From positions 941,798-1,005,797 of the forward strand of contig NW_005434671.1 in NCBI RefSeq assembly GCF_000315625.1: a DNA stretch of 64,000 nt, written 5' to 3'. The notes below the pieces were generated by a model, which was given only the letters and a program-made list of their open reading frames with translations, ran no database searches and was not told the DNA's origin. Positions 37,708 to 59,826 of this stretch are shown here, one piece after another; position 1 is the first letter of the stretch, and the number at the start of each line of letters is the position of its first letter. Origin of the DNA: Guillardia theta CCMP2712. Taxonomy: Eukaryota > Protista > Cryptophyta. Both the position numbers and the translations under genes were made by a program.

Positions 37708-38292
37708 GCTGCTGCCTCCGCGGCTGGGGCGCAAGCAATAGGGTCCGAATGGAAAAATGAAATCGACTGAATACCCTCCATTTGAGTCTGCAGTAGGGGT
37801 CCTTACCCTTGTTATAAAGCCCAATCTATAAAACCATAGTGTACCCTCTACTGATAAAGTTAGTCAGAGCTAGGGGTGGTACAGTTTAAAAACAAAAACT
37901 GTTATGTTGTCGTTCTACGTCTATGCAGACCGAGGACGCCTCCCAAGGGATGGGAACTTATAAAAACAACAATTTCCCACATATATAAAATTTCTACTGA
38001 ATACGTTTTAGTGGTACCAAAGTCCGGAATGAAGGATAGCACAAACTCGTACAAAAGTAATCTTTAAAAACAATTTTTTCACACATTTCATATTCAAATA
38101 AGTATTACATTTGAAACTTCATCGGAACATTTGAAATATTCACTGCTATTTCACGTGTTGTACGATAGAACATCCGGAATTGCCCGTACAGAATAATAAA
38201 ACTAATAGAGCCGGGTGTACAACCGGGCCATCAGAAGAGCATCCCCCATTGTCACATATAAAAAGAATTGGAGGACAATGTCTTTGAGTGGG

Positions 38293-38365
38293 CACCCACG
38301 ATGGGACTCGAACCCACAATCTCACCCTTAGGAGGGGTGCGCCGTATCCATTGGGCCACGCGGGC
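38293..38365 (-). tRNA. tRNA-Arg (anticodon CCT)
   Basis: Reverse complement GCCCGCG TGGCCCAATGGATACGGCG CACCC CT CCT AA GGGTG AGATT GTGGG TTCGAGT CCCAT CGTGGGT G: 73-nt cloverleaf, no intron. Confidence 0.95.
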
Positions 38366-46800: not shown

Positions 46801-48914
46801 GAGCGAAGGTTGTCAAATACTGCGAGCTGGGAAGACGCTCGGCAAACGCTTTCTGATCTTCTCATGACAGCAGTCAGTTCATGATAAGACCTTTCAACAG
46901 CTATACCTTGTTCGCTCCACTCCCAGCCGTGCGAGGGAGAGAGGATCTCATTCCTGCTGCTGAGCGTCGTGACATCGGGCCCAGTCTGCACCTCTTGACT
47001 TCTCGTCGTCACATGCCCTCGTCGGACTTTGATCAGCGGGAGGTCTTTTTCCTCCGGGCGATGAGGAGCGTTTGAGGTGGCAGCGAATGCATCGTCGCCG
47101 GCGAGGGAGAGAAGGTCTAGCTTGCGAGGGCGACTCTCCTGCTGCTTCTCCCCCTGCATGATGTGCGGCCTTACAAACTTGTCGATGTTGAACTGGATCT
47201 GTTCCACCAATGTGTCAACACGACAGGATCGCAAACACGACCACCAATGCAGCGATCAAAGGCACCACAGGCTTTCTCATGCACACCTGAGAGATCTCCA
47301 TCGGAGGAACGATAGTGTTGAGGGCAACCTCCATCTGATCTACAGTGCTGGCCTCGGAGATTCTTCCCTCAAGAGCATTCTGCTCAACGCTCGTGAACAA
47401 CTGAGGCAGGAGAAGCGAGGAAGGGATCACCTTGATCGACACAAAGAGGGCTGCGCAGACCTTGGGTAGGGAAGTTTTCCCGAAGATGAAGATCAGATCC
47501 CAGAGGAACAGGGTGACTTCCAGCCTGCAGAAAGACAAAACAGACGTGTATCAAATCAAACAGCGCCACAAGCATCAGTGCAGCTAATCTCGACATCATA
47601 TCACACTATGATCATCTCAACCGATAACATCCTAGCTCTTACCTCACGAAAACTCCAGTGAACATCCTTTGAACGAGCGGTAAGAGCAGCAAGCTCAGTC
47701 CTCCATGCACTTTCATATCCTTTGTCTTTCTCAGATCCCAGATCTTGTGCTTGCTGTGGTGAACGAGGCTGGAACCCCCAGCTCTCTGCCCAGCAAAGTG
47801 CTCGCTCGACGCAACCTTGCTGACCAGCTGATAATACTTCTCGTCCTCCTTGCGGATCATCACGGAGACCTGGAGCTCTCAGTCAAGACACATAGACATT
47901 CCATCATCTCAAGGCACCTCATCCACAAATTCCCTCCACGCGTTCTGCTGCTGTGCGCTCTCCGGCTTGCACGTGTCCTCATTCATGAACTCGCTCAGCC
48001 CCGTACCCTCCTGCTCGTCCGGTCACAAGGACTCTGCGATGCTCGAGGAGAGCTACCTTCATTGCTACGAAGTAGTCAAGGAGCCCCTGCGGCCTCATCC
48101 CCTCCCTCAGAAGATCAGAGCTCGTGTCTGCAGGCACCATGGTTGCCACCAGCGGAACGACAGCGAACAACCAGGGCGTCACTAAGTCGACCTTGCTGCT
48201 TGCTGTGAGGTGTGATATGACTGCAATGATGGCGTTCAGACATGCAAGGGAAGGTCAAGTCATTGTCTACCTGTTTTCATCAGGTTTGCCCTTTTCGTGA
48301 CGTTCCTGACCCCCAGCTCATTCAGCAGCTCGCTGCACATTGTCCACAACTACAAGGCTCGTCAACGATGACAACAAGGTCAGATCACCCTCTCCTTCCA
48401 TCTCCCACACCTCTGCATCATTCGCGGCGATCTTCAGCGCAACGTCCCCTGAGCTATTCCGAAGGCTCCCTCGGAGGTACATGCCCCAGACCTGAACCCG
48501 CAATGCTGCAGGAAGTCCGTAGAAGCTCAGATGCCGCAGGATGTCGAAACGGTCTGGCCATCGCTCAAGAATGGTGCCTGAGATGTTGCCAGCGATGTTC
48601 ACAAGAATCTCCATCTTGCCAAGAGTCGAGCCTGGCTTGTTCGAATCCCTGATCGACTGCTCTTGCATGTACCTTTCCGTGATATGTTCAGCCTTGTGAA
48701 CGAGGCTCTGGTAAGCATCGCTCTCGGGAAGAAACTCGTCTTCAATGGATGAGAACAAGGCAGACCTCTGCTCTTGGCTGAGATCAGAGAAGATGCTTCT
48801 CCCGTTGGTGACCACTCTTTCCTTCATCTCCTCCAGAATGATGGAGACGAGCTCTTCCCATTCTTCGGAGTCTTCGAATGACTCTTTGAAGGTGTCAAGC
48901 CCTCGTGCTGTCAT
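43844..48914 (-). CDS. Rab-GAP TBC-domain protein, apparently continuing into GYF_2 and IQ motifs (could be two genes)
   Basis: TBC-like GLPAALRVQVWG and LFLWDLIFIFG…KVCAALF; GYF_2-like SYFFVEGKERKGPVDFEQ|LCSLYQEGKIVPETSVWYKSLGPKW; IQ-like AATRLQLWWRRILR. Confidence 0.7.
44477..44582. repeat. ~36-bp purine-rich tandem repeat x3 (intronic)
   Basis: GAAGAGAGAAAGAAGGAGAGAAAGAGGATGAGA-like units. Confidence 0.85.
45387..45486. other. 100-N assembly gap with the same ~170 bp on both sides
   Basis: 45217-45386 reappears almost identically at 45487-45656. Confidence 0.9.
45716..45806. repeat. (GGA)n microsatellite
   Basis: Directly visible. Confidence 0.95.
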
Positions 48915-49339
48915 CTCCTTGCGGGCTCAGGCAGTTTCATCCTCCCCAGCTGCCATGCCAGCTACCCTTGCAAGCACGCGCCCGCCCAACTCCTGCCATG
49001 TTTGCTCCCTCAGAAACCATGGCATGCAACCAACGATAGACCGAGCAAGCTCACCTCGCGACGAGGGACCGGGGCGATTGATGACTCGGCGTCGGATCTC
49101 GTCAGTGCCGGTGGCACCCCGGCCGCCCGGGCCGCGCCGCCGGGCGGCCCGCCAGTCGGACTCCCGGAGTCCGGGAGACCGCTCAGTCCGCCGGAGCCCA
49201 CCTCAGTGTACGGTCCGAGGCCTGGCCTTCACTCAAAGTGAGGTGTCACATAACAGAGCCGAAAACGGATCATGATGGTATTCCGAAGTTCTTCATCCCG
49301 AGTCCCTGGAAGTCCGGCAACTTCAGCATCGAGCTCGCA

Positions 49340-49428
49340 CTGCTGGGTCTAGCCGTCTTCCTTGCAGGAGAGGCTTGCGCTTCTGCTGGGTCTAGCCGTC
49401 TTCCTTGCAGGAGAGGCTTGCGCTTCTG
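49340..49428. repeat. Perfect 43-bp tandem duplication
   Basis: CTGCTGGGTCTAGCCGTCTTCCTTGCAGGAGAGGCTTGCGCTT occurs twice. Confidence 0.9.
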
Positions 49429-50041
49429 CTCTTTGTCCTGAACATGCCGTCGCTCCGATGTGGTGGGAGTAAAGGTTTTCGCATCCTCCTCTTTTCCCAT
49501 TTTTCTGTTGAGGCGAATTTGTTGCCATTCCCTTTCGACAGTCTGGTTCGAAGCCAGCATCACTGCCGCGGCTCCAGGAATATGATCCTGCCCAAGTGGT
49601 GAGAGCGCGAGGTGCGCTATGCCACGGCCCCCAGGATAACTTAGTCGTTCTCGCATCGCACTGCGGAAGCTGAACCAAGTGGGAGGCGAACAGACTATCG
49701 GGGAGCACGCCGATCAAATCGTTTATTGCACACCAATATACATTGAAGCCTTCTTCCCTCCCCTCTTCACGCCTCGCGTCCCCCCTGCTCTCGTCTACCT
49801 CTGCGATCGCCCGCTGCCTCTCCTCGAGCTTCCTCCGCGCAGCAAGGATGTTCTCCAGACAGCTCCCCTTGCTCGCCTTGACGATGCCCGGCGGCTGTCT
49901 CGGGAGGGCTGGAGCTTGGGGGAGGAGGGGCAGGTCTCCGGCTGATCTCTTGCAGGGGAGGGCGACGGGGAGCGTGCGGGGAGGAGGGGAGGGAGCGGCG
50001 GAGAGGGAGACCTCGGACCAGAGAACGGTTACAGGGCGCAT
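49349..50041 (-). CDS. WSEVS/LENILAARRK microprotein family, copy 1 (stop lost by 1-bp deletion; reads through)
   Basis: MRPVTVLWSEVSLSAAP…SCLENILAARRKLEERQRAIAEVDESRG, then a shifted frame. Confidence 0.5.
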   Translation of the reverse strand: MRPVTVLWSEVSLSAAPSPPPRTLPVALPCKRSAGDLPLLPQAPALPRQPPGIVKASKGSCLENILAARRKLEERQRAIAEVDESRGDARREEGREEGFNVYWCAINDLIGVLPDSLFASHLVQLPQCDARTTKLSWGPWHSAPRALTTWAGSYSWSRGSDAGFEPDCRKGMATNSPQQKNGKRGGCENLYSHHIGATACSGQRAEAQASPARKTARPSRSASLSCKEDG

Positions 50042-51051
50042 GGCGTGCGAGAGGCAAGGAAGGGGGAAGGCAGAGCGAGGACAGGCTGGACGAGGGAGAG
50101 GCCGAGGTGATGGACAAGACGAGGCTGGAGAGGAGGGGGCGGGAGAGAGCAGCGAGTCGGAGCCTGATGAAGGAGTCGAAGGGAAGTAACTCCGGTATGG
50201 ACATGCAAGTGACACGGACCTGGCACGGATGTTGGATCCGGGATACGAAACGATGTATCTGTAGATATCTGGTTGGGAAGGGGGTTGCTGACGGAGACAT
50301 ATGGATTCGAACTGAGAGGATTTCGCGGCATTGCAACGAAGGCCCTGGGCACGGACCTGCAGTGACGAACGTAGATATGGAGGTCTGTATTTTGAGATCT
50401 TGGTAGTCAAGTCAGCAACCTCTTGGGAACATCAACTTTTTATGTCAGCATTCTGCCGCTACAGGTTGTCGATGGGATGTTTCCGAATGGCAGACTCGGA
50501 CGTGATCGTCCGACTGTATTGTCATGGTCCATTTACCGCACTATGCTTACCACGTCAGGCCACCGCCCCGGTCGATCAACCAGTCTCCAGGAACTCCCGG
50601 ACCAAGGAAGTGTACGGTGTACTTTACCGACTCGAGTGATGCCGGCGGCCCCGACCTGGGCCCGGCGCTCAGGCTGGCCGCGCGACGGAGCTGTCAGTTG
50701 AAGCACCGATTCATGACTTGTCATGCTGATTCAAGGCGCCACAGTCTGAAGGTCGGCGTGTCCCATGCGAGCATGGCTCGCTGTACGGAGTTGTATGCGA
50801 TGTTCGTGGAGCACTGCGATTCGTCTCGGACAACTTCAAGCAGAGCCTAAGTGGTATGTGTTCACTGCTGCACCACAGGCACTCAAACTTCATGTCAGGA
50901 GGATCCAGCGGCAAAACTTCGTCATCGAAGCGATACTCTAGTTATATTGTACAGCCATCAGCACATAGCAAGACAAGCAAGACCCTCGGCTCACATGGAT
51001 CTTTATTTACAAGCGCTATGTACATTTCCCGCCTATCGTCCCCTCCCCTCC

Positions 51052-51327
51052 TCACGCCTCGCGTCTCCCCCTACTCTCGTCTACCTCTGCGATCGCCCGC
51101 TGCCTCTCCCCGTGCTTCCTCCGCGCAGCAAGGATGTTCTCCAGACAGCTCCCCTTGCTCGCCTTGACGATGCCCGGCGGCTGTCTCGGGAGGGCTGGAG
51201 CTTGGGGGAGGAGGGGAAGGTCTCCGGCTGATCTCTTGCAGGGGAGGGCGACGGGGAGCTTGCGGGGAGGAGGGGAGGGAGCAGCGGAGAGGGAGACCTC
51301 GGACCAGAGAACGGTGACAGGGCGCAT
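51052..51327 (-). CDS. Microprotein family, copy 2 (91 aa)
   Basis: Intact ATG-to-TGA ORF with TGTAAATAAA downstream. Confidence 0.65.
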   Translation of the reverse strand: MRPVTVLWSEVSLSAAPSPPPRKLPVALPCKRSAGDLPLLPQAPALPRQPPGIVKASKGSCLENILAARRKHGERQRAIAEVDESRGRREA

Positions 51328-51921
51328 GCAAGACGAGGCTGGAGAGGAGGGGGCGGGAGAGAGCAGCGAGTCGGAGCCTTATGAAGGAGTCGAAGGGAAG
51401 TAACTCCGGTATGGACATGCAAGTGACACGGACCTGGCACGGACGTTGGATCCGGGATACGAAACGATGTATCTGTAGATATCTGGTTGGAATGGGGGTT
51501 GCTGACGGAGACGTATGGATTCGAACTGAGAGGATTTCGCGGCATTGCAACGAAGGCCCTGGTCACGGACTAGCTGCTGCTTACAGCCGTCAGCAACCTC
51601 TTGGGAACATCACTGCGAAGGAGGTCCGTGTGATAGGGACGTTTTATGTCACAGACGCCTCCGTAAAGACGCCGCCGGATGCGAAGGTTGTTAGTAGATG
51701 AAAAGTGGTGGAGTCCGTGCTATGTATGAAGTCTTACGAGGAATCGTTGTACTTTTACTCTGTTCCAGGAACATGAGATATGCTCTAGTAGTGAGAGGCT
51801 TGCGCCGTGACTCACTTCGGAACAAGTCCGTCACGAGGCTGACAATGATGTCCTTGTGACTATCCTCGACTGACCTCTTGAAGGAGACTCGTGCTCTGGT
51901 CTGCCTCCTGCCACCAGCTTC

Positions 51922-52215
51922 ATGCGCTCCCTCACCATCCGCTGGTCCGAGGTCTCTGTCTCCGCCGCTCCTCATCCCCGCTGTCCCTTCTTGCGCGCTG
52001 TCGCTCCAGCTGGCCCCGCATGTAGGAGAAGAGCGGACGAGTCTAAGGGGAGCATGACGTCCACGAGCTGCCTTGAGAACATTCTAGCGGCGAGGAGAAA
52101 ACATCAGGAAAAGCATCAAGCCCTTCGAACGTCCAAGCACGAGCAAGGGAAGAAAGTGGGTTCAGAGATGGATAGCCGAGGACGGGGAATGGACACGACG
52201 ACATGTAAATGCTAG
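51922..52215 (+). CDS. Microprotein family, diverged copy 3 (97 aa)
   Basis: MRSLTIRWSEVSVSAAP…SCLENILAARRKHQEKHQAL…; TGTAAATAAA just after the stop. Confidence 0.65.
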   Translation: MRSLTIRWSEVSVSAAPHPRCPFLRAVAPAGPACRRRADESKGSMTSTSCLENILAARRKHQEKHQALRTSKHEQGKKVGSEMDSRGRGMDTTTCKC

Positions 52216-52739
52216 AATGTAAATAAACTCTTTGCACTTAAAGACAGAAAGACATCATATCTCCCAAGAAGAGCCAAATACAGTCAACCTGAGCTTCATG
52301 CCTCCCTGTGCTTATTTCCAAGATGCCGCTATCAGCTTGTCCAATGCCATACCAGGTCTTATTTTTTATCATCTTGACGAGCTCGTGGGAAAGCAAGAGT
52401 AATGTTTTTCTTGTTGGTCATCAGTCGATGAGATCTTCTTTCCTCTTCAGAGAATCTCACGCCGCAGATGATCTTAGTATGTCAACAGGATCATCAAACT
52501 GCAGATAGCAGACTGAGGTACCAGGCGGTTTGCACCATGCTGCCATCCCTCCTCCTCCTCATCATCAACTGTCCGCATTCTTGAGCAGCTGAGGTGTCTC
52601 TTTCCAAAGAGGGAACAACCCTCGTGAGTCGTTCTCCTGGAATCTGTTCCGCACGCTGTCGATGCCTTGCGCCCTGTTGACTTTCCCTGTCTGCAGGCAC
52701 ATAAGAGGAGTGTCGTGATGCTTGTCTCTCCTCCACGGG

Positions 52740-54082
52740 TCAGCCTGGTGCTCCAGCTGGACCTTGACTACATCTCTCTGCCCGTAGTAGGACGCAATGT
52801 GCAGCGTTGCCGAATTTCTTTTCCCTCACCTTCACGTCCACTCCAAACTTGGACAGGAGCAACTTAGCCTCGGATCTTTGGTCTGCCGTACTTAGCCGAA
52901 ACATGAAGGTGAGGAGCGTTTTCAGATGTTTGCAGAGCTTCTGATCCTCATGGATACTTGCATCACTCACTACCTTCAACCACAAAAACCTGCACATGGT
53001 GCTGCACATGGTGCTGTATTCTTGCAGGAAGCTTTTCATGTGCATGTTGAAGTCGTCACTGTTGCCCTCATTTCCGGTGACGATAACTTCGTAGTCGATC
53101 TGTTCATCTTCAGAGTCACCGGCATCGCTCACTTCAGACTGACTGACTGTCTCCTCATCCGAGAGCTCACTCTTGTCTCCTGCTGGGGAGCAAAGGTGCG
53201 CTGTGCATACTGACATCTCCCTCATTTGCCTTAAATAGTTTTCCACCACCTACTCACAATTCATATTCGAAAGATATCGAGCCATCTTCGCGAGCCAGTC
53301 CTCGTTAAGGGATGAAGTCACTGGTGTTGCTTCTTCTCCCTGTATTGCTTCTCCATCTTCTTCCATCTCTTCTGCCTCCTCCTCAGGCCTTGAAAGACAG
53401 AAAGCTGAAGCATCTCAATGACCGTACAACTTGTACCCACTGAACATCTTCTTGCTTTAGCCATGGAAGTCGACAAAGATTGATGTCCGACAAGACCGTC
53501 ATACAATTTCTCTGTGAACTCAATCGCTTTATCATCTTCCAAGCCTCCTTTGTGTCCGATCGAAAAGTCAACAATCTTTGCCAGTTTCCTTTTATGTTCG
53601 TTGGAAGCACATGCGTTGAACACCACCAGCTGCGCTTGGGCAGCTCCCTCCTTCTCTGCCTGCAGATTGTGAGCACTGACAGCGTCCATGATGGTTTCAG
53701 AAACGACAATATTTCGGAAGAGGCCGATTGCTTCATTCCCTGCATGGCAACTGAAGTGAAGAATGAGAGGATGGCGATTATTGAAGTCTGTGCCGCTCAG
53801 GATGGCATGAACGTAACGGATACCTCCACTTAACTGCGCGCAGGACAATTCCCCCGCCCCATGCCAGGAGGCCTTGAGCTGACGAAAGATCCTGGACCGG
53901 ATGCGTTTACAAGTCGGATCACCTGAGACGTCTTGCGAGGCCGTGAGACCATCCAGCGCTGCCGTTTCCTTGTTCGCCGAGCGATCCGCCAACCACCACA
54001 GAAAGCGCATCCTGCAAGAGGCCATCAGTGCTGGCGATGATGGGAAGAAAGGCCTTTGGCGGGACGTGCTGAGCATATGCAT
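52740..54082 (-). CDS. CHAT (caspase-HetF-like) domain protein; intact by splicing or a pseudogene
   Basis: PLILHFSCHA (catalytic His), LVVFNACAS (catalytic Cys), FSIG…LEDDKAIEFTEKLYDGL..HQSLSTSM, matching the CHAT pattern HFsGHG/lvvLnAC/D.aa..F...FY..L. An acidic linker and a further domain follow in another frame. Confidence 0.7.
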
Positions 54083-54872
54083 TACGATGCCCTCGGATCT
54101 TCCGCTGTGCTGCTGATTTCAGTTTGCTCCGAGCGAGGTCCGGTATTCAGTCCATCATTGTCAAAAACAAGTGACATGCTGAAGTCCAGGATTAACCCAT
54201 GCCATCCACCTCCAGTCTCCTGCAGTTGCGAAAGTACTGATATGTCTCAAGGGAGGAAAGAGGAAGCCTCTCGCTCCCTCCCGGCCGGCGGAGTCCGACT
54301 CGGAACTCAGCGGCGGGCCGCCATATGTCAACGTCAAGTGCGGCCGCGGCCGCCAAGCCTTGAAGGGTGGCCCGGGCCCGGGCCCGGGGGGGAGGGGACT
54401 GAGTGAGCGTTCGAAACGGACTCGGAACGAGCGTGACGGGCCCGGGGCCTTGCTGGGCCCTCAGCATGTCGCACCTGTCATGCGTTGCTGACGACCCAGT
54501 GACTTTGGGCTAGTGCTAACCACACGGGGTATCCTCTATCACCGCTTCAAGTGTCTGAGTGAAAGAGTCTGATACAGGATATTTTATGTCAGCGACCTCG
54601 TGACCGTTTGAGTCTATAGTGATAGGCTACCTTCGGACCATCTGTCCGACCATTCTAGAATCTCCGGACGTGGCCTCCGTGTGAGCTTTGATGCCACTCG
54701 GGCTCAATGTTCCTCTAAACTCGTCGCCGGATGTTTACTACAGTGACTGATGATTCCAAAAACGGTCACGAGGTCGCTGCGTGACCAGGCAGAGCCGCAT
54801 TCCCCTTGACTTCTTCAACCACTCCGCTGCACCTCAACTTCCCCTCAACCACCAGCGCCGCCAAGACTCGCC

Positions 54873-55127
54873 ATGCGCCCTGTCACCGTTCTCTGGTCCG
54901 AGGTCTCCCTCTCCGCCGCTCCCTCCCCTCCTCCCCGCGCGCTCCCCGTCGCCCTCCCTTGCAAGAGATCAGCCGGAGACCTGCCCCTCCTCCCCCAAGC
55001 TCCAGCCCTCCCGAGACAGCCGCCGGGCATCGTCAAGGCAAGCAAGGGGAGCTGTCTGGAGAACATCCTTGCTGCGCGGAGGAAGCTCGAGGAGAGGCAG
55101 CGGGCGATCATCGGATTGCAGAGGTAG
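54873..55127 (+). CDS. Microprotein family, copy 4 (84 aa, 8-bp insertion variant)
   Basis: ATCGGATT insertion gives C-terminus IIGLQR*. Confidence 0.6.
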   Translation: MRPVTVLWSEVSLSAAPSPPPRALPVALPCKRSAGDLPLLPQAPALPRQPPGIVKASKGSCLENILAARRKLEERQRAIIGLQR

Positions 55128-56063
55128 ACGAGAGTAGGGGGAGACGCGAGGCGTGAGGAGGGGAGGGGACGATGGGCATGTACATAGCGCTTGTAAATAA
55201 AGATCCATGTGAGCTGAGATCGTGAGCGACAGGACATGCAGCACGGCACTCCACCAGAGTTGAGCGATGCCATTGCAGACAGCCGTGCAGACGGAGATGG
55301 CAGGAGCCCTGACTTGTTTGTACCTTGTTGAGCAGGAACGTCATTCATTGTCCGTGACTTTGAGTCAGTCGACGATGAGGCGTCTCAAGATGTGGAGACA
55401 CGAGAGGGATAAGAAGCTTTCCGTTTTTGAAAGCGACGTTGGTTTTGTGTGCATGATCTTCAATTGTTTTCTTCCTTGACGGAAACACAATCGAAGAGAG
55501 CAACTCACTTGCGTTGGTTCGGAGAGTCAAGCTTCTTTTATCAGAACACTTGCGAAATGAACTCCACTCAGACAAGATGATACTCGCATCATTCAGCATA
55601 TGCAAATTTGGACTCGGAACGAGCGTGAGGGCCCGGGGCCTTGCTGGGCCCTCAGCATGTCGCACCTGTCATGCGTTGCTGACGACCCAGTGACTTTGGG
55701 CTAGTGCTAACCACACGGGGTATCCTCTATCACCGCTTCAAGTGTCTGAGTGAAAGAGTCTGATACAGGATATTTTATGTCAGCGACCTCGTGACCGTTT
55801 GAGTCTATAGTGATAGGCCACCTTCGGACCATCTGTCCGACCATTCTAGAATCTCCGGACGTGGCCTCCGTGTGAGCTTTGATGCCACTCGGGCTCAATG
55901 TTCCTCTAAACTCGTCGCCGGATGTTTACTACAGTGACTGATGATTCCAAAAACGGTCACGAGGTCGCTGCGTGACCAGGCAGAGCCGCATTCCCCTTGA
56001 CTTCTTCAACCACTCCGCTGCACCTCAACTTCCCCTCAACCACCAGCGCCGCCAAGACTCGCC

Positions 56064-56318
56064 ATGCGCCCTGTCACCGTTCTCTGGTCCGAGGTCTCCC
56101 TCTCCGCCGCTCCCTCCCCTCCTCCCCGCGCGCTCCCCGTCGCCCTCCCTTGCAAGAGATCAGCCGGAGACCTGCCCCTCCTCCCCCAAGCTCCAGCCCT
56201 CCCGAGACAGCCGCCGGGCATCGTCAAGGCAAGCAAGGGGAGCTGTCTGGAGAACATCCTTGCTGCGCGGAGGAAGCTCGAGGAGAGGCAGCGGGCGATC
56301 ATCGGATTGCAGAGGTAG
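56064..56318 (+). CDS. Microprotein family, copy 5 (84 aa variant)
   Basis: Same as copy 4. Confidence 0.6.
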   Translation: MRPVTVLWSEVSLSAAPSPPPRALPVALPCKRSAGDLPLLPQAPALPRQPPGIVKASKGSCLENILAARRKLEERQRAIIGLQR

Positions 56319-57275
56319 ACGAGAGTAGGGGGAGACGCGAGGCGTGAGGAGGGGAGGGGACGATGGGCTGGACATGTACATAGCGCTTGTAAATAAAGAT
56401 CCATGTGAGCTGAGATCGTGAGCGACAGGACATGCAGCACGGCACTCCACCAGAGTTGAGCGATGCCATTGCAGACAGCCGTGCAGACGGAGATGGCGGG
56501 AGCCCTTTCTTGTTCTTGAGTGATAAGAAGCTTTCCGTTCGAAAGTGGGTTTGTGTGCATGATCTTCAATTGTTTTCTTCCTTGACGGAAACACAATCGA
56601 AGAGAGCAACTCACTTGCGTTGGTTCGGAGAGTCAAGCTTCTTTTATCAGAACACTTGCGAAATGAACTCCACTCAGACAAGATGCTACTCGCAGGGAAG
56701 GATAGCACTGAAAGATCGGGCTTGGATCAGGAGCAGAAGAGTGCCTGAAGCGAGAGTTTGCACGAGGCGAGTGGAGCAAAGAGCACTAGTTCTAGTCTGT
56801 CACACCCCGAAGCTTGACGGGTTGCAGACATCTACTGCGAATACTCAAGGCAACTCCTCTAGATCACACATACTAAAATAAACGTGGCATACAACTTGGG
56901 GAGAGAACGGAAAGATTCGTTGTAGATCGCTGCATCCTGTCAAGCTTCTGGGTGATACATTTCCTTGGTTTCGACTTATTTTTCGCTTACAAGCTGAATG
57001 GCCACTAATGGCATCAATCACGAGAAAGATATTACCGAAACTGATCTCCTCCTCATTCTTCGAATGGGGAGGAAATACTGCGATCATTCCTAGGGTTGAA
57101 ATTCGGAAGAGCTATCATCGCCGTGCATGCTAACGTACTGATATGCAGATAGTATCCCTGCTGTTGATTTTTCGACCCCTGTATCATCCAGTATGTGCCT
57201 ATCTCGATCTCAGCTCACATGGATCTTTATTTACAAGCGCTATGTACATGTCCAGCCCATCGTCCCCTCCCCTCC

Positions 57276-57551
57276 TCACGCCTCGCGTCTCCCCCTACTC
57301 TCGTCTACCTTTGTGATCGCCCGCTGCCTCTCCTCGAGCTTCCTCCGCGCAGCAAGGATGTTCTCCAGACAGCTCCCCTTGCTCGCCTTGACGATGCCCG
57401 GCGGCTGTCTCGGGAGGGCTGGAGCTTGGGGGAGGAGGGGCAGGTCTCCGGCTGATCTCTTGCAGGGGAGGGCGACGGGGAGCGCGCGGGGAGGAGGGGA
57501 GGGAGCGGCGGAGAGGGAGACCTCGGACCAGAGAACGGTGACAGGGCGCAT
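57276..57551 (-). CDS. Microprotein family, copy 6 (91 aa), left palindrome arm
   Basis: Intact ORF; AATAAA downstream on the minus strand. Confidence 0.65.
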   Translation of the reverse strand: MRPVTVLWSEVSLSAAPSPPPRALPVALPCKRSAGDLPLLPQAPALPRQPPGIVKASKGSCLENILAARRKLEERQRAITKVDESRGRREA

Positions 57552-57950
57552 GGCGTGGCAGGAGGAAGGAGGAAGGGGCGGAGTGACAGCAGGCATCTGT
57601 TAGGCATCTTTTGAAGGAGCCAAAGGGGCCCGGTCACGCGGAGAAATGGGATATTTTATGTCAGCGACCTCGTGACCGTTTGAGTCTATAGTGATAGGCT
57701 ACCTTCGGACCATCTGTCCGACCATTCTAGAATCTCCGGACGTGGCCTCCGTGTGAGCTTTGATGCCACTCGGGCTGGTGTAAACTGTAAGATGGATGGG
57801 TCGCCGGATGTTTACTACAGTGACTACTCCAAAAACGGTCACGAGGTCGCTGACATAAAATATCCCATTTCTCCGCGTGACCGGGCCCCTTTGGCTCCTT
57901 CAACAGATGCCTGCTGTCACTCCGCCCTTCCTCCTTCCTCCTGCCACGCC

Positions 57951-58226
57951 ATGCGCCCTGTCACCGTTCTCTGGTCCGAGGTCTCCCTCTCCGCCGCTCC
58001 CTCCCCTCCTCCCCGCGCGCTCCCCGTCGCCCTCCCCTGCAAGAGATCAGCCGGAGACCTGCCCCTCCTCCCCCAAGCTCCAGCCCTCCCGAGACAGCCG
58101 CCGGGCATCGTCAAGGCAAGCAAGGGGAGCTGTCTGGAGAACATCCTTGCTGCGCGGAGGAAGCTCGAGGAGAGGCAGCGGGCGATCGCAGAGGTAGACG
58201 AGAGTAGGGGGAGACGCGAGGCGTGA
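57951..58226 (+). CDS. Microprotein family, copy 7 (91 aa), right palindrome arm
   Basis: Intact ORF with TGTAAATAAA downstream. Confidence 0.65.
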   Translation: MRPVTVLWSEVSLSAAPSPPPRALPVALPCKRSAGDLPLLPQAPALPRQPPGIVKASKGSCLENILAARRKLEERQRAIAEVDESRGRREA

Positions 58227-59138
58227 GGAGGGGAGGGGACGATAGGCGGGACATGTACATAGCGCTTGTAAATAAAGATCCATGTGAGCTGAGATCGTGA
58301 GCGACAGGACATGCAGCACGGCACTCCACCAGAGTTGAGCGATGCCATTGCAGACAGCCGTGCAGACGGAGATGGCAGGAGCCCTGACTTGTTTGTACCT
58401 TGTTGAGCAGGAACGTCATTCATTGTCCGTGACTTTGAGTCAGTCGACGATGAGGCGTCTCAAGATGTGGAGACACGAGAGGGATAAGAAGCTTTCCGTT
58501 TTTGAAAGCGACGTTGGTTTTGTGTGCATGATCTTCAATTGTTTTCTTCCTTGACGGAAACACAATCGAAGAGAGCAACTCACTTGCGTTGGTTCGGAGA
58601 GTCAAGCTTCTTTTATCAGAACACTTGCGAAATGAACTCCACTCAGACAAGATGATACTCGCATCATTCAGCATATGCAAATTTGGACTCGGAACGAGCG
58701 TGAGGGCCCGGGGCCTTGCTGGGCCCTCAGCATGTCGCACCTGTCATGCGTTGCTGACGACCCAGTGACTTTGGGCTAGTGCTAACCACACGGGGTATCC
58801 TCTATCACCGCTTCAAGTGTCTGAGTGAAAGAGTCTGATACAGGATATTTTATGTCAGCGACCTCGTGACCGTTTGAGTCTATAGTGATAGGCCACCTTC
58901 GGACCATCTGTCCGACCATTCTAGAATCTCCGGACGTGGCCTCCGTGTGAGCTTTGATGCCACTCGGGCTCAATGTTCCTCTAAACTCGTCGCCGGATGT
59001 TTACTACAGTGACTGATGATTCCAAAAACGGTCACGAGGTCGCTGCGTGACCAGGCAGAGCCGCATTCCCCTTGACTTCTTCAACCACTCCGCTGCACCT
59101 CAACTTCCCCTCAACCACCAGCGCCGCCAAGACTCGCC

Positions 59139-59393
59139 ATGCGCCCTGTCACCGTTCTCTGGTCCGAGGTCTCCCTCTCCGCCGCTCCCTCCCCTCCTCC
59201 CCGCGCGCTCCCCGTCGCCCTCCCTTGCAAGAGATCAGCCGGAGACCTGCCCCTCCTCCCCCAAGCTCCAGCCCTCCCGAGACAGCCGCCGGGCATCGTC
59301 AAGGCGAGCAAGGGGAGCTGTCTGGAGAACATCCTTGCTGCGCGGAGGAAGCTCGAGGAGAGGCAGCGGGCGATCATCGGATTGCAGAGGTAG
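59139..59393 (+). CDS. Microprotein family, copy 8 (84 aa variant)
   Basis: Same as copy 4. Confidence 0.6.
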   Translation: MRPVTVLWSEVSLSAAPSPPPRALPVALPCKRSAGDLPLLPQAPALPRQPPGIVKASKGSCLENILAARRKLEERQRAIIGLQR

Positions 59394-59826
59394 ACGAGAG
59401 TAGGGGGAGACGCGAGGCGTGAGGAGGGGAGGGGACGATGGGCTGGACATGTACATAGCGCTTGTAAATAAAGATCCATGTGAGCTGAGATCGTGAGCGA
59501 CAGGACATGCAGCACGGTACTCCACCAGAGTTGAGCGATGCCATTGCAGACAGCCGTGCAGACGGAGATGGCGGGCGCCCTGACTTGTTTGTACCTTGTT
59601 GAGCAGGAACGTCATTCATTGTCCGTGACTTTGAGTCAGTCGACGATGAGGCGTCTCAAGATGTGGGGACACGATGAGCACGAATGGAAGCTGTCAGCTG
59701 GAAATGAGATGTAGGAATGGCTCGATATCGGATCACTTTCTATCGATCTGAATTGCATTCATTTTGTTTTGTTGGTAACCTCGAAGGTCTTGATGACTAG
59801 TCTTCGTTGTCCATGTTTCATGTGAA

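Follow-up and report, generated by a model that had tools for sequence, protein, structure and literature searches.

The stretch of DNA analyzed here (the window, 64,000 nucleotides, contig C3:941798-1005797 of the 87.1-Mb, 669-contig genome of Guillardia theta CCMP2712) contains eight short open reading frames (ORFs) that share two conserved peptide motifs (Table 1). These ORFs are, with good probability, real intronless microprotein genes maintained by selection, which would include a young array and form a branch of a Guillardia superfamily, and whose products may act as adaptors. A first-pass annotation of the window had described an eight-copy family of intronless microproteins of 84-97 amino acids (aa). 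All eight start positions were recovered and all eight ORFs are uninterrupted. The size range holds for seven of them (84 aa in three, 91 aa in three, 97 aa in one), but not for copy 1, which runs over 230 aa from its ATG. The number of copies had to be revised, as a profile of the ORF together with a degenerate DNA pattern for the C-terminal motif gave a genome total of 18. The public annotation lacks all 18 copies, and none turned up when family ORFs were looked up by exact match in the protein collection.

The N-terminal motif (N motif) occupies residues 1-17 and reads M-[RC]-x-[VIL]-[TS]-(P)-[VI]-x-W-S-[ER]-V-S-[LV]-S. The C-terminal motif (C motif), starting at residue 61 of 91, is a basic amphipathic helix, [ST]-C-L-[ED]-N-I-L-A-A-R-[RV]-K, and the linker between the two is rich in Pro and Ser and evolves fast. 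In an AlphaFold2 model based on a 10-sequence alignment, residues 1-60 were disordered, without secondary structure, and were followed by a single helix over residues 61-89, with a block-mean predicted local distance difference test (pLDDT) score of 83-89 over residues 61-80. No domain was recognized in these proteins, as had been stated earlier: Pfam scans at E<=10 of 5 and then 20 members were empty, the PDB sequence profile search and the ESM Atlas gave no match, and literature searches on the motif strings and on GUITHDRAFT identifiers found nothing. The previous reading as a short-linear-motif protein fits the AlphaFold model, i.e., a disordered chain with one confident helix. Two short conserved pieces and a free-running linker in a disordered chain suggest an adaptor or regulator with two docking motifs. 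The N motif would dock onto one or several folded partners by strand addition, and the conserved face of the helix would be the other docking contact.

Seven of the eight window copies are 94-100% identical in DNA. The eighth, copy 3 (starting at 51922), is diverged and retains only the two motifs, as described before, its DNA differing from that of the other copies everywhere except in two short stretches. The degenerate DNA pattern of the C motif gave 17 matches in the whole genome and none in the control, and ten further copies were found at three loci besides C3. Locus C29 carries a palindromic pair (C29:544289-547543, copies at about 1501-1773 on the plus strand and 2570-2854 on the minus strand); small indels break the frame of the minus-strand twin between its N motif and the remainder, a sign of either pseudogenization or an error of assembly. 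Five copies are found at C97, two of which lack the N motif, and three at C358. CL[ED]NILAAR[RV]K is present in all 18 copies except one degenerate C97 copy (CLDNIYGARRK). Across loci, the family ORFs measure 84-110 aa, and 17 of the 18 copies have an intact ORF. Three extra matches to the DNA pattern of the N motif (C17, C69, C90) were judged to be due to chance, so the family stays at 18. As far as their sequences tell, copy 3 and the C29, C97 and C358 clusters are older branches of the family. Satellite blocks whose self-match offsets step by ~23 nucleotides (nt) adjoin the C97 cluster (C97:48557-49141, 53624-53961, 58333-58920), and a segmental duplication of ~4.8 kb is found there (48802-51093 vs 53624-55913), with open frames of 681 and 709 aa giving only weak AAA-domain hints.

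Evidence for selection at the protein level comes from the comparison of these loci. DNA similarity between them is confined to the two motifs, and the ten paralogues at the three other loci keep the peptide motifs with different codons. The ratio of non-synonymous to synonymous substitution (dN/dS, NG86 over the two motif blocks) was 0.00-0.06 among the main copies, copy 3 and C29, with a proportion of synonymous differences (pS) of 0.49-0.69. It reached 0.13-0.30 against the C97 and C358 clusters and was above about 0.9 in both shifted frames. Protein-level selection, which had been suspected from copy 3, is borne out by these comparisons, and over the motif blocks the ratio between this copy and its closest lineages was far from 1. 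In the C-motif block, varying columns fell at codon positions 1/2/3 in numbers of 4/4/11 (of 12 third positions). A constraint on DNA or RNA would not be expected to leave synonymous change near saturation within a stretch that is otherwise fixed. Among the seven young copies, 9 sites vary (5 synonymous and 4 non-synonymous), the changes in the motif cores being all synonymous. Also, GC content in the sense frame is highest at the third codon position, as in bona fide G. theta ORFs. Antisense coding was considered and rejected, as stops interrupt the antisense frame in 6 of 11 members and the sense frame in none.

The family appears to be one branch of a larger, Guillardia-restricted superfamily, whose common feature is a C-terminal LxNILxAR(R/K)K helix. 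The LxNILxAR string had 64 matches in the genome vs 8 in the control, and 21 vs 0 when followed by a basic pair, and a helix-only profile found at least 42 places at E<=1e-3. Twenty helix loci were read and showed small ORFs in which a strand-like motif near the N-terminus (RSIRF, RVQF, RSVRL...W) is joined by a disordered linker to the helix, which is followed by a charged tail. The members GUITHDRAFT_149058, GUITHDRAFT_101869 and GUITHDRAFT_150361 are listed publicly as hypothetical proteins, and two members have near-orthologues in ENA/Logan assemblies. The window family shares with the superfamily an uninterrupted ORF of 60-130 aa, the N-terminal strand-like motif and disordered linker, the helix [SN][FC][VL]-L-x-N-I-L-x-A-R-[RK]-K with its charged tail, and the occurrence in local tandem or palindromic clusters. 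It differs by its own N motif, M[RC]x[VIL][TS][VI]xWS[ER]VS[LV]S at residue 1, by S-C-L-[ED] before the helix, and by the absence of annotation for all its copies; the link made by hhalign is confined to the helix region. The hhalign comparison of the window family with the other superfamily ORFs gave a probability of 97.7% (E 2.3e-12, 30 columns over the helix), a result that is partly circular, as the compared members had been chosen by their helix motif. Pairs of helix-motif ORFs were observed at other places, either in mirror image (C49:276220(-)/279315(+), C355:1980(+)/3262(-)) or in direct orientation (C86:217702/219197). The superfamily may have multiplied repeatedly through palindromic or tandem duplication.

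The circularity of the hhalign score is one of several points that weigh against our interpretation. The N motifs were not aligned by hhalign, their likeness being visible only in a joint alignment. The motif blocks used for dN/dS were picked by amino acid conservation, which biases dN downward, and the ratio of non-synonymous to synonymous proportions (pN/pS) rises to 0.39 when the blocks are widened by one flanking codon at both ends. On these widened blocks, the antisense frame with shared wobble positions scores 0.38, and only its stops exclude it. The ORFs of the young copies are in themselves weak proof of coding, because most of the six frames are open there, and frameshifts affect copy 1 as well as the C29 twin. 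As for the docking mechanism, it is purely inferred.

Open frames of this kind might be accidental in GC-rich, stop-poor sequence, the repeat being non-coding DNA such as a segmental duplication, a satellite or a transposon fragment. The abundance of open frames over the young copies would agree with such an origin, as would the repeat units, which extend well past the ORF, and the absence of every copy from annotation and protein collection. However, the likeness between loci is restricted to two peptide motifs with differing wobble codons, the codon-position pattern already contradicts a non-coding repeat, and only the sense frame is open in all diverged lineages. A dispersed element is also contradicted by genome searches with 431-nt and 451-nt unit flanks, which matched the window locus only, and the Rfam scan of the region gave no match at the repeat. 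A transposable-element terminus or a long terminal repeat (LTR), one of the cases that the first-pass annotation had named as fatal to its proposal, was discarded on the same grounds, namely locus-only flanks and matches between loci limited to the two coding motifs; no transposon domain was found among the ORFs scanned. We regard a non-coding origin as extremely improbable. It seems very improbable, too, that the ORF belongs to some larger spliced gene as its first or its last exon. Neighboring genes are said to be intron-rich, the frame is open upstream of the ATG in some copies, and tail lengths vary among copies. Against this, conservation begins exactly at the ATG with the first motif and fades 10-25 codons beyond the helix, sequences upstream and downstream differ between subfamilies, and a polyA-like signal follows most stops. 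Moreover, each superfamily member that has been annotated stands alone as a small protein of 78-121 aa, with ends that agree with those of the ORF, and the genes flanking the four clusters (CHAT-like, LRR, WD40 and weak AAA ORFs) vary by locus, without any recurring neighbor.

If these are genes for docking proteins, protein phosphatase 1 (PP1) is a candidate partner. They would then be regulators of PP1, the N-terminal [VI]-x-[FW] strand serving as an RVxF-type docking motif and the helix as a second contact. RVxF-type partners of PP1 include Inhibitor-2, Inhibitor-3 and PNUTS, the latter with a TVTW motif. Like many PP1 partners, the family consists of small disordered proteins with short docking motifs, and the [VI]-x-[FW] core (VLW, IRW, VYW, VSW) occurs in all window-type lineages. 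In the joint alignment, one column holds both the W of the window copies and the F of the RSIRF/RVQF strings found in the rest of the superfamily. The strict RVxF expression was found in 5 of 15 other superfamily members (0.35 expected; 0 of 2000 shuffles reached 5) and [ST][IV]x[FW] in 3 of 7 window-type lineages (0.10 expected), counts that are not independent, as several expressions were tried and the members are related. In contrast, the strict expression, [RK]-x(0,1)-[VI]-{P}-[FW], matched none of the 7 window-type lineages, which unlike known partners have no basic residue at -1 or -2 before the V/I. No sequence family supports the assignment either: Pfam at E<=10 returned neither Inhibitor-2 (IPP-2) nor another PP1-regulator family, and no PDB chain matched. 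To our knowledge, no helix motif of this kind has been described as a PP1 docking site. The elements WSE... and ...ENILA presumably resemble WDEMNILAT in the W-D-E-x-N-I-L region of IPP-2, a family of which Pfam gave no match in the 5 + 20 members. Altogether, we consider a role in PP1 regulation unlikely. WSEV and WSRV also fit the core [WFY]-x-x-[LIV] of the ATG8-interacting motif (LC3-interacting region, LIR; Atg8-interacting motif, AIM), a very common pattern that lacks an acidic flank here and is absent from the other superfamily members. Extending the PP1 proposal, the whole superfamily might be a cryptophyte-specific invention, a large set of disordered microproteins that dock onto a single conserved hub enzyme (PP1 being the leading candidate) and redirect it, which we find quite unlikely. 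The helix would then be the common handle, the variable N-terminal strand motif and the linker would confer specificity, and young arrays such as that of the window would represent ongoing diversification.

The genes of the window lie in repeats that exceed the ORF, with units up to 1191 bp (Table 1). Recent segmental duplication, both tandem and inverted, may have given rise to the seven near-identical copies, or their similarity may have been kept by gene conversion. The family had been called actively amplifying: identities within the array fit this description, which is itself an inference, as gene conversion would look alike. Copies 1 and 2 have in common a 242-nt upstream block (50115-50356 vs 51329-51570, 98%). 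Similarity of copy 1 to the others stops near 49756, and an exact 43-nt tandem duplication (49340-49425) lies at the far end of its extended frame.

Table 1. Positions of the microprotein gene copies, repeat units and flanking elements in the window.
Feature	Position	Strand	Remarks
Copy 1	49352..50041	-	N and C motifs intact; 1-nt deletion after codon 87, giving a 230-aa frame
Copy 2	51052..51327	-	91 aa plus stop
Copy 3	51922..52215	+	Diverged paralogue, 97 aa; keeps only the N motif and the SCLENILAARRK helix motif
Copy 4	54873..55127	+	84 aa; short ...IIGLQR tail from an 8-nt insertion
Copy 5	56064..56318	+	84 aa; first 237 nt identical to copy 4
Copy 6	57276..57551	-	91 aa; left arm of palindrome
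Copy 7	57951..58226	+	91 aa; right arm of palindrome
Copy 8	59139..59393	+	84 aa
Tandem repeat units	54438-55628, 55629-56694	+	One gene each; internal deletion in the second unit
Third repeat unit	58704-59678		
Palindrome	57202-57577 / 57925-58300		376-nt arms, 98% complementary, 347 nt between arms; copies 6 and 7 head to head
Older inverted pair	49756-50045 and 50985-51328		With its own shared upstream block
TGTAAATAAA	55192..55201(+), 51002(-), 52218(+), 56388(+), 57226(-), 58267(+), 59463(+)		Candidate polyadenylation signal
128-nt upstream element	54577..54704, 55768-55895, 57649-57776, 58843-58970		Contains TGACATAAAA; either orientation relative to the ORF

Two short sequences accompany the ORFs. 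TGTAAATAAA occurs 7 times vs 0.04 expected, at 43-72 nt after the stop, and at 5 nt in copy 3. It had been reported to follow the stop even in the diverged copy, which is correct for 7 of the 8 copies, copy 3 included, and fails for copy 1, which has no downstream TGTAAATAAA. More generally, TGTAA or AATAAA was found within 80 nt beyond the stop in 13 of 15 family members; a literature search for the G. theta polyA signal gave no confirmation of either as a cryptophyte signal. TGACATAAAA also occurs 7 times (0.08 expected). The upstream location proposed for it was found again, with seven occurrences instead of four and one of them at 57851 rather than 57849. Each of the seven young copies has it upstream, three of them in the opposite orientation, and the 128-nt element containing it may be a TATA-like piece of a promoter.

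Outside this genome, a profile search of 1.84 billion protein representatives returned only two sequences from ENA assemblies, P0001 and P0002, both of which keep the motifs. P0001 is 84 aa long, differs from the window copies by two residues, and comes from an ENA contig of 830 nt. It mixes the features of several copies: RKLP is shared with copy 2 and the IIGLQR tail with the tandem copies, and KESKG is unique to it. Its source is either an additional copy missing from the assembly or a very close relative. The other sequence, P0002, is a fragment of the C29 type. When the superfamily is included, matches beyond this genome were only P0001, P0002, P0005 and P0007 (ENA/Logan assemblies), and scans of viral contigs and of Joint Genome Institute (JGI) metagenomes gave no relatives of the family. 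The family appears to be lineage-specific, as had been supposed, with relatives in this alga plus one very close relative only.

Two other observations were made in the window. A 266-aa open frame within the array (53321-54118, minus strand) has a weak match to the caspase-like CHAT domain (PF12770, E 0.0018, 18 bits, below the 24-bit cut-off). Also, a tRNA-Arg gene (anticodon CCT; 38291-38365, minus strand) is the sole Rfam/ARAGORN match of the window.

The family resembles orphan tandem-array families, whose relatives are confined to one genus or its very close kin, whose products are short and disordered, and whose amplification is recent and local. It differs from such families in general by purifying selection on two defined motifs across four old loci, and such selection indicates that we are not dealing with a just-born or a decaying ORF. 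Judged by the sequence searches, it matches no described protein family; this novelty is meant at the family level, the mechanism being a proposal. A reference algal genome would gain at least 18 predicted genes that lack annotation. With the other helix-motif ORFs, at least 24 in number, they would constitute a sizeable family of disordered microproteins, maintained by selection and missed by standard gene calling. The array, with its tandem units and palindrome, would be the record of a very recent gene amplification or gene conversion. If the two motifs do dock onto a conserved hub, this family would offer a compact system for studying the origin and multiplication of lineage-specific regulators.

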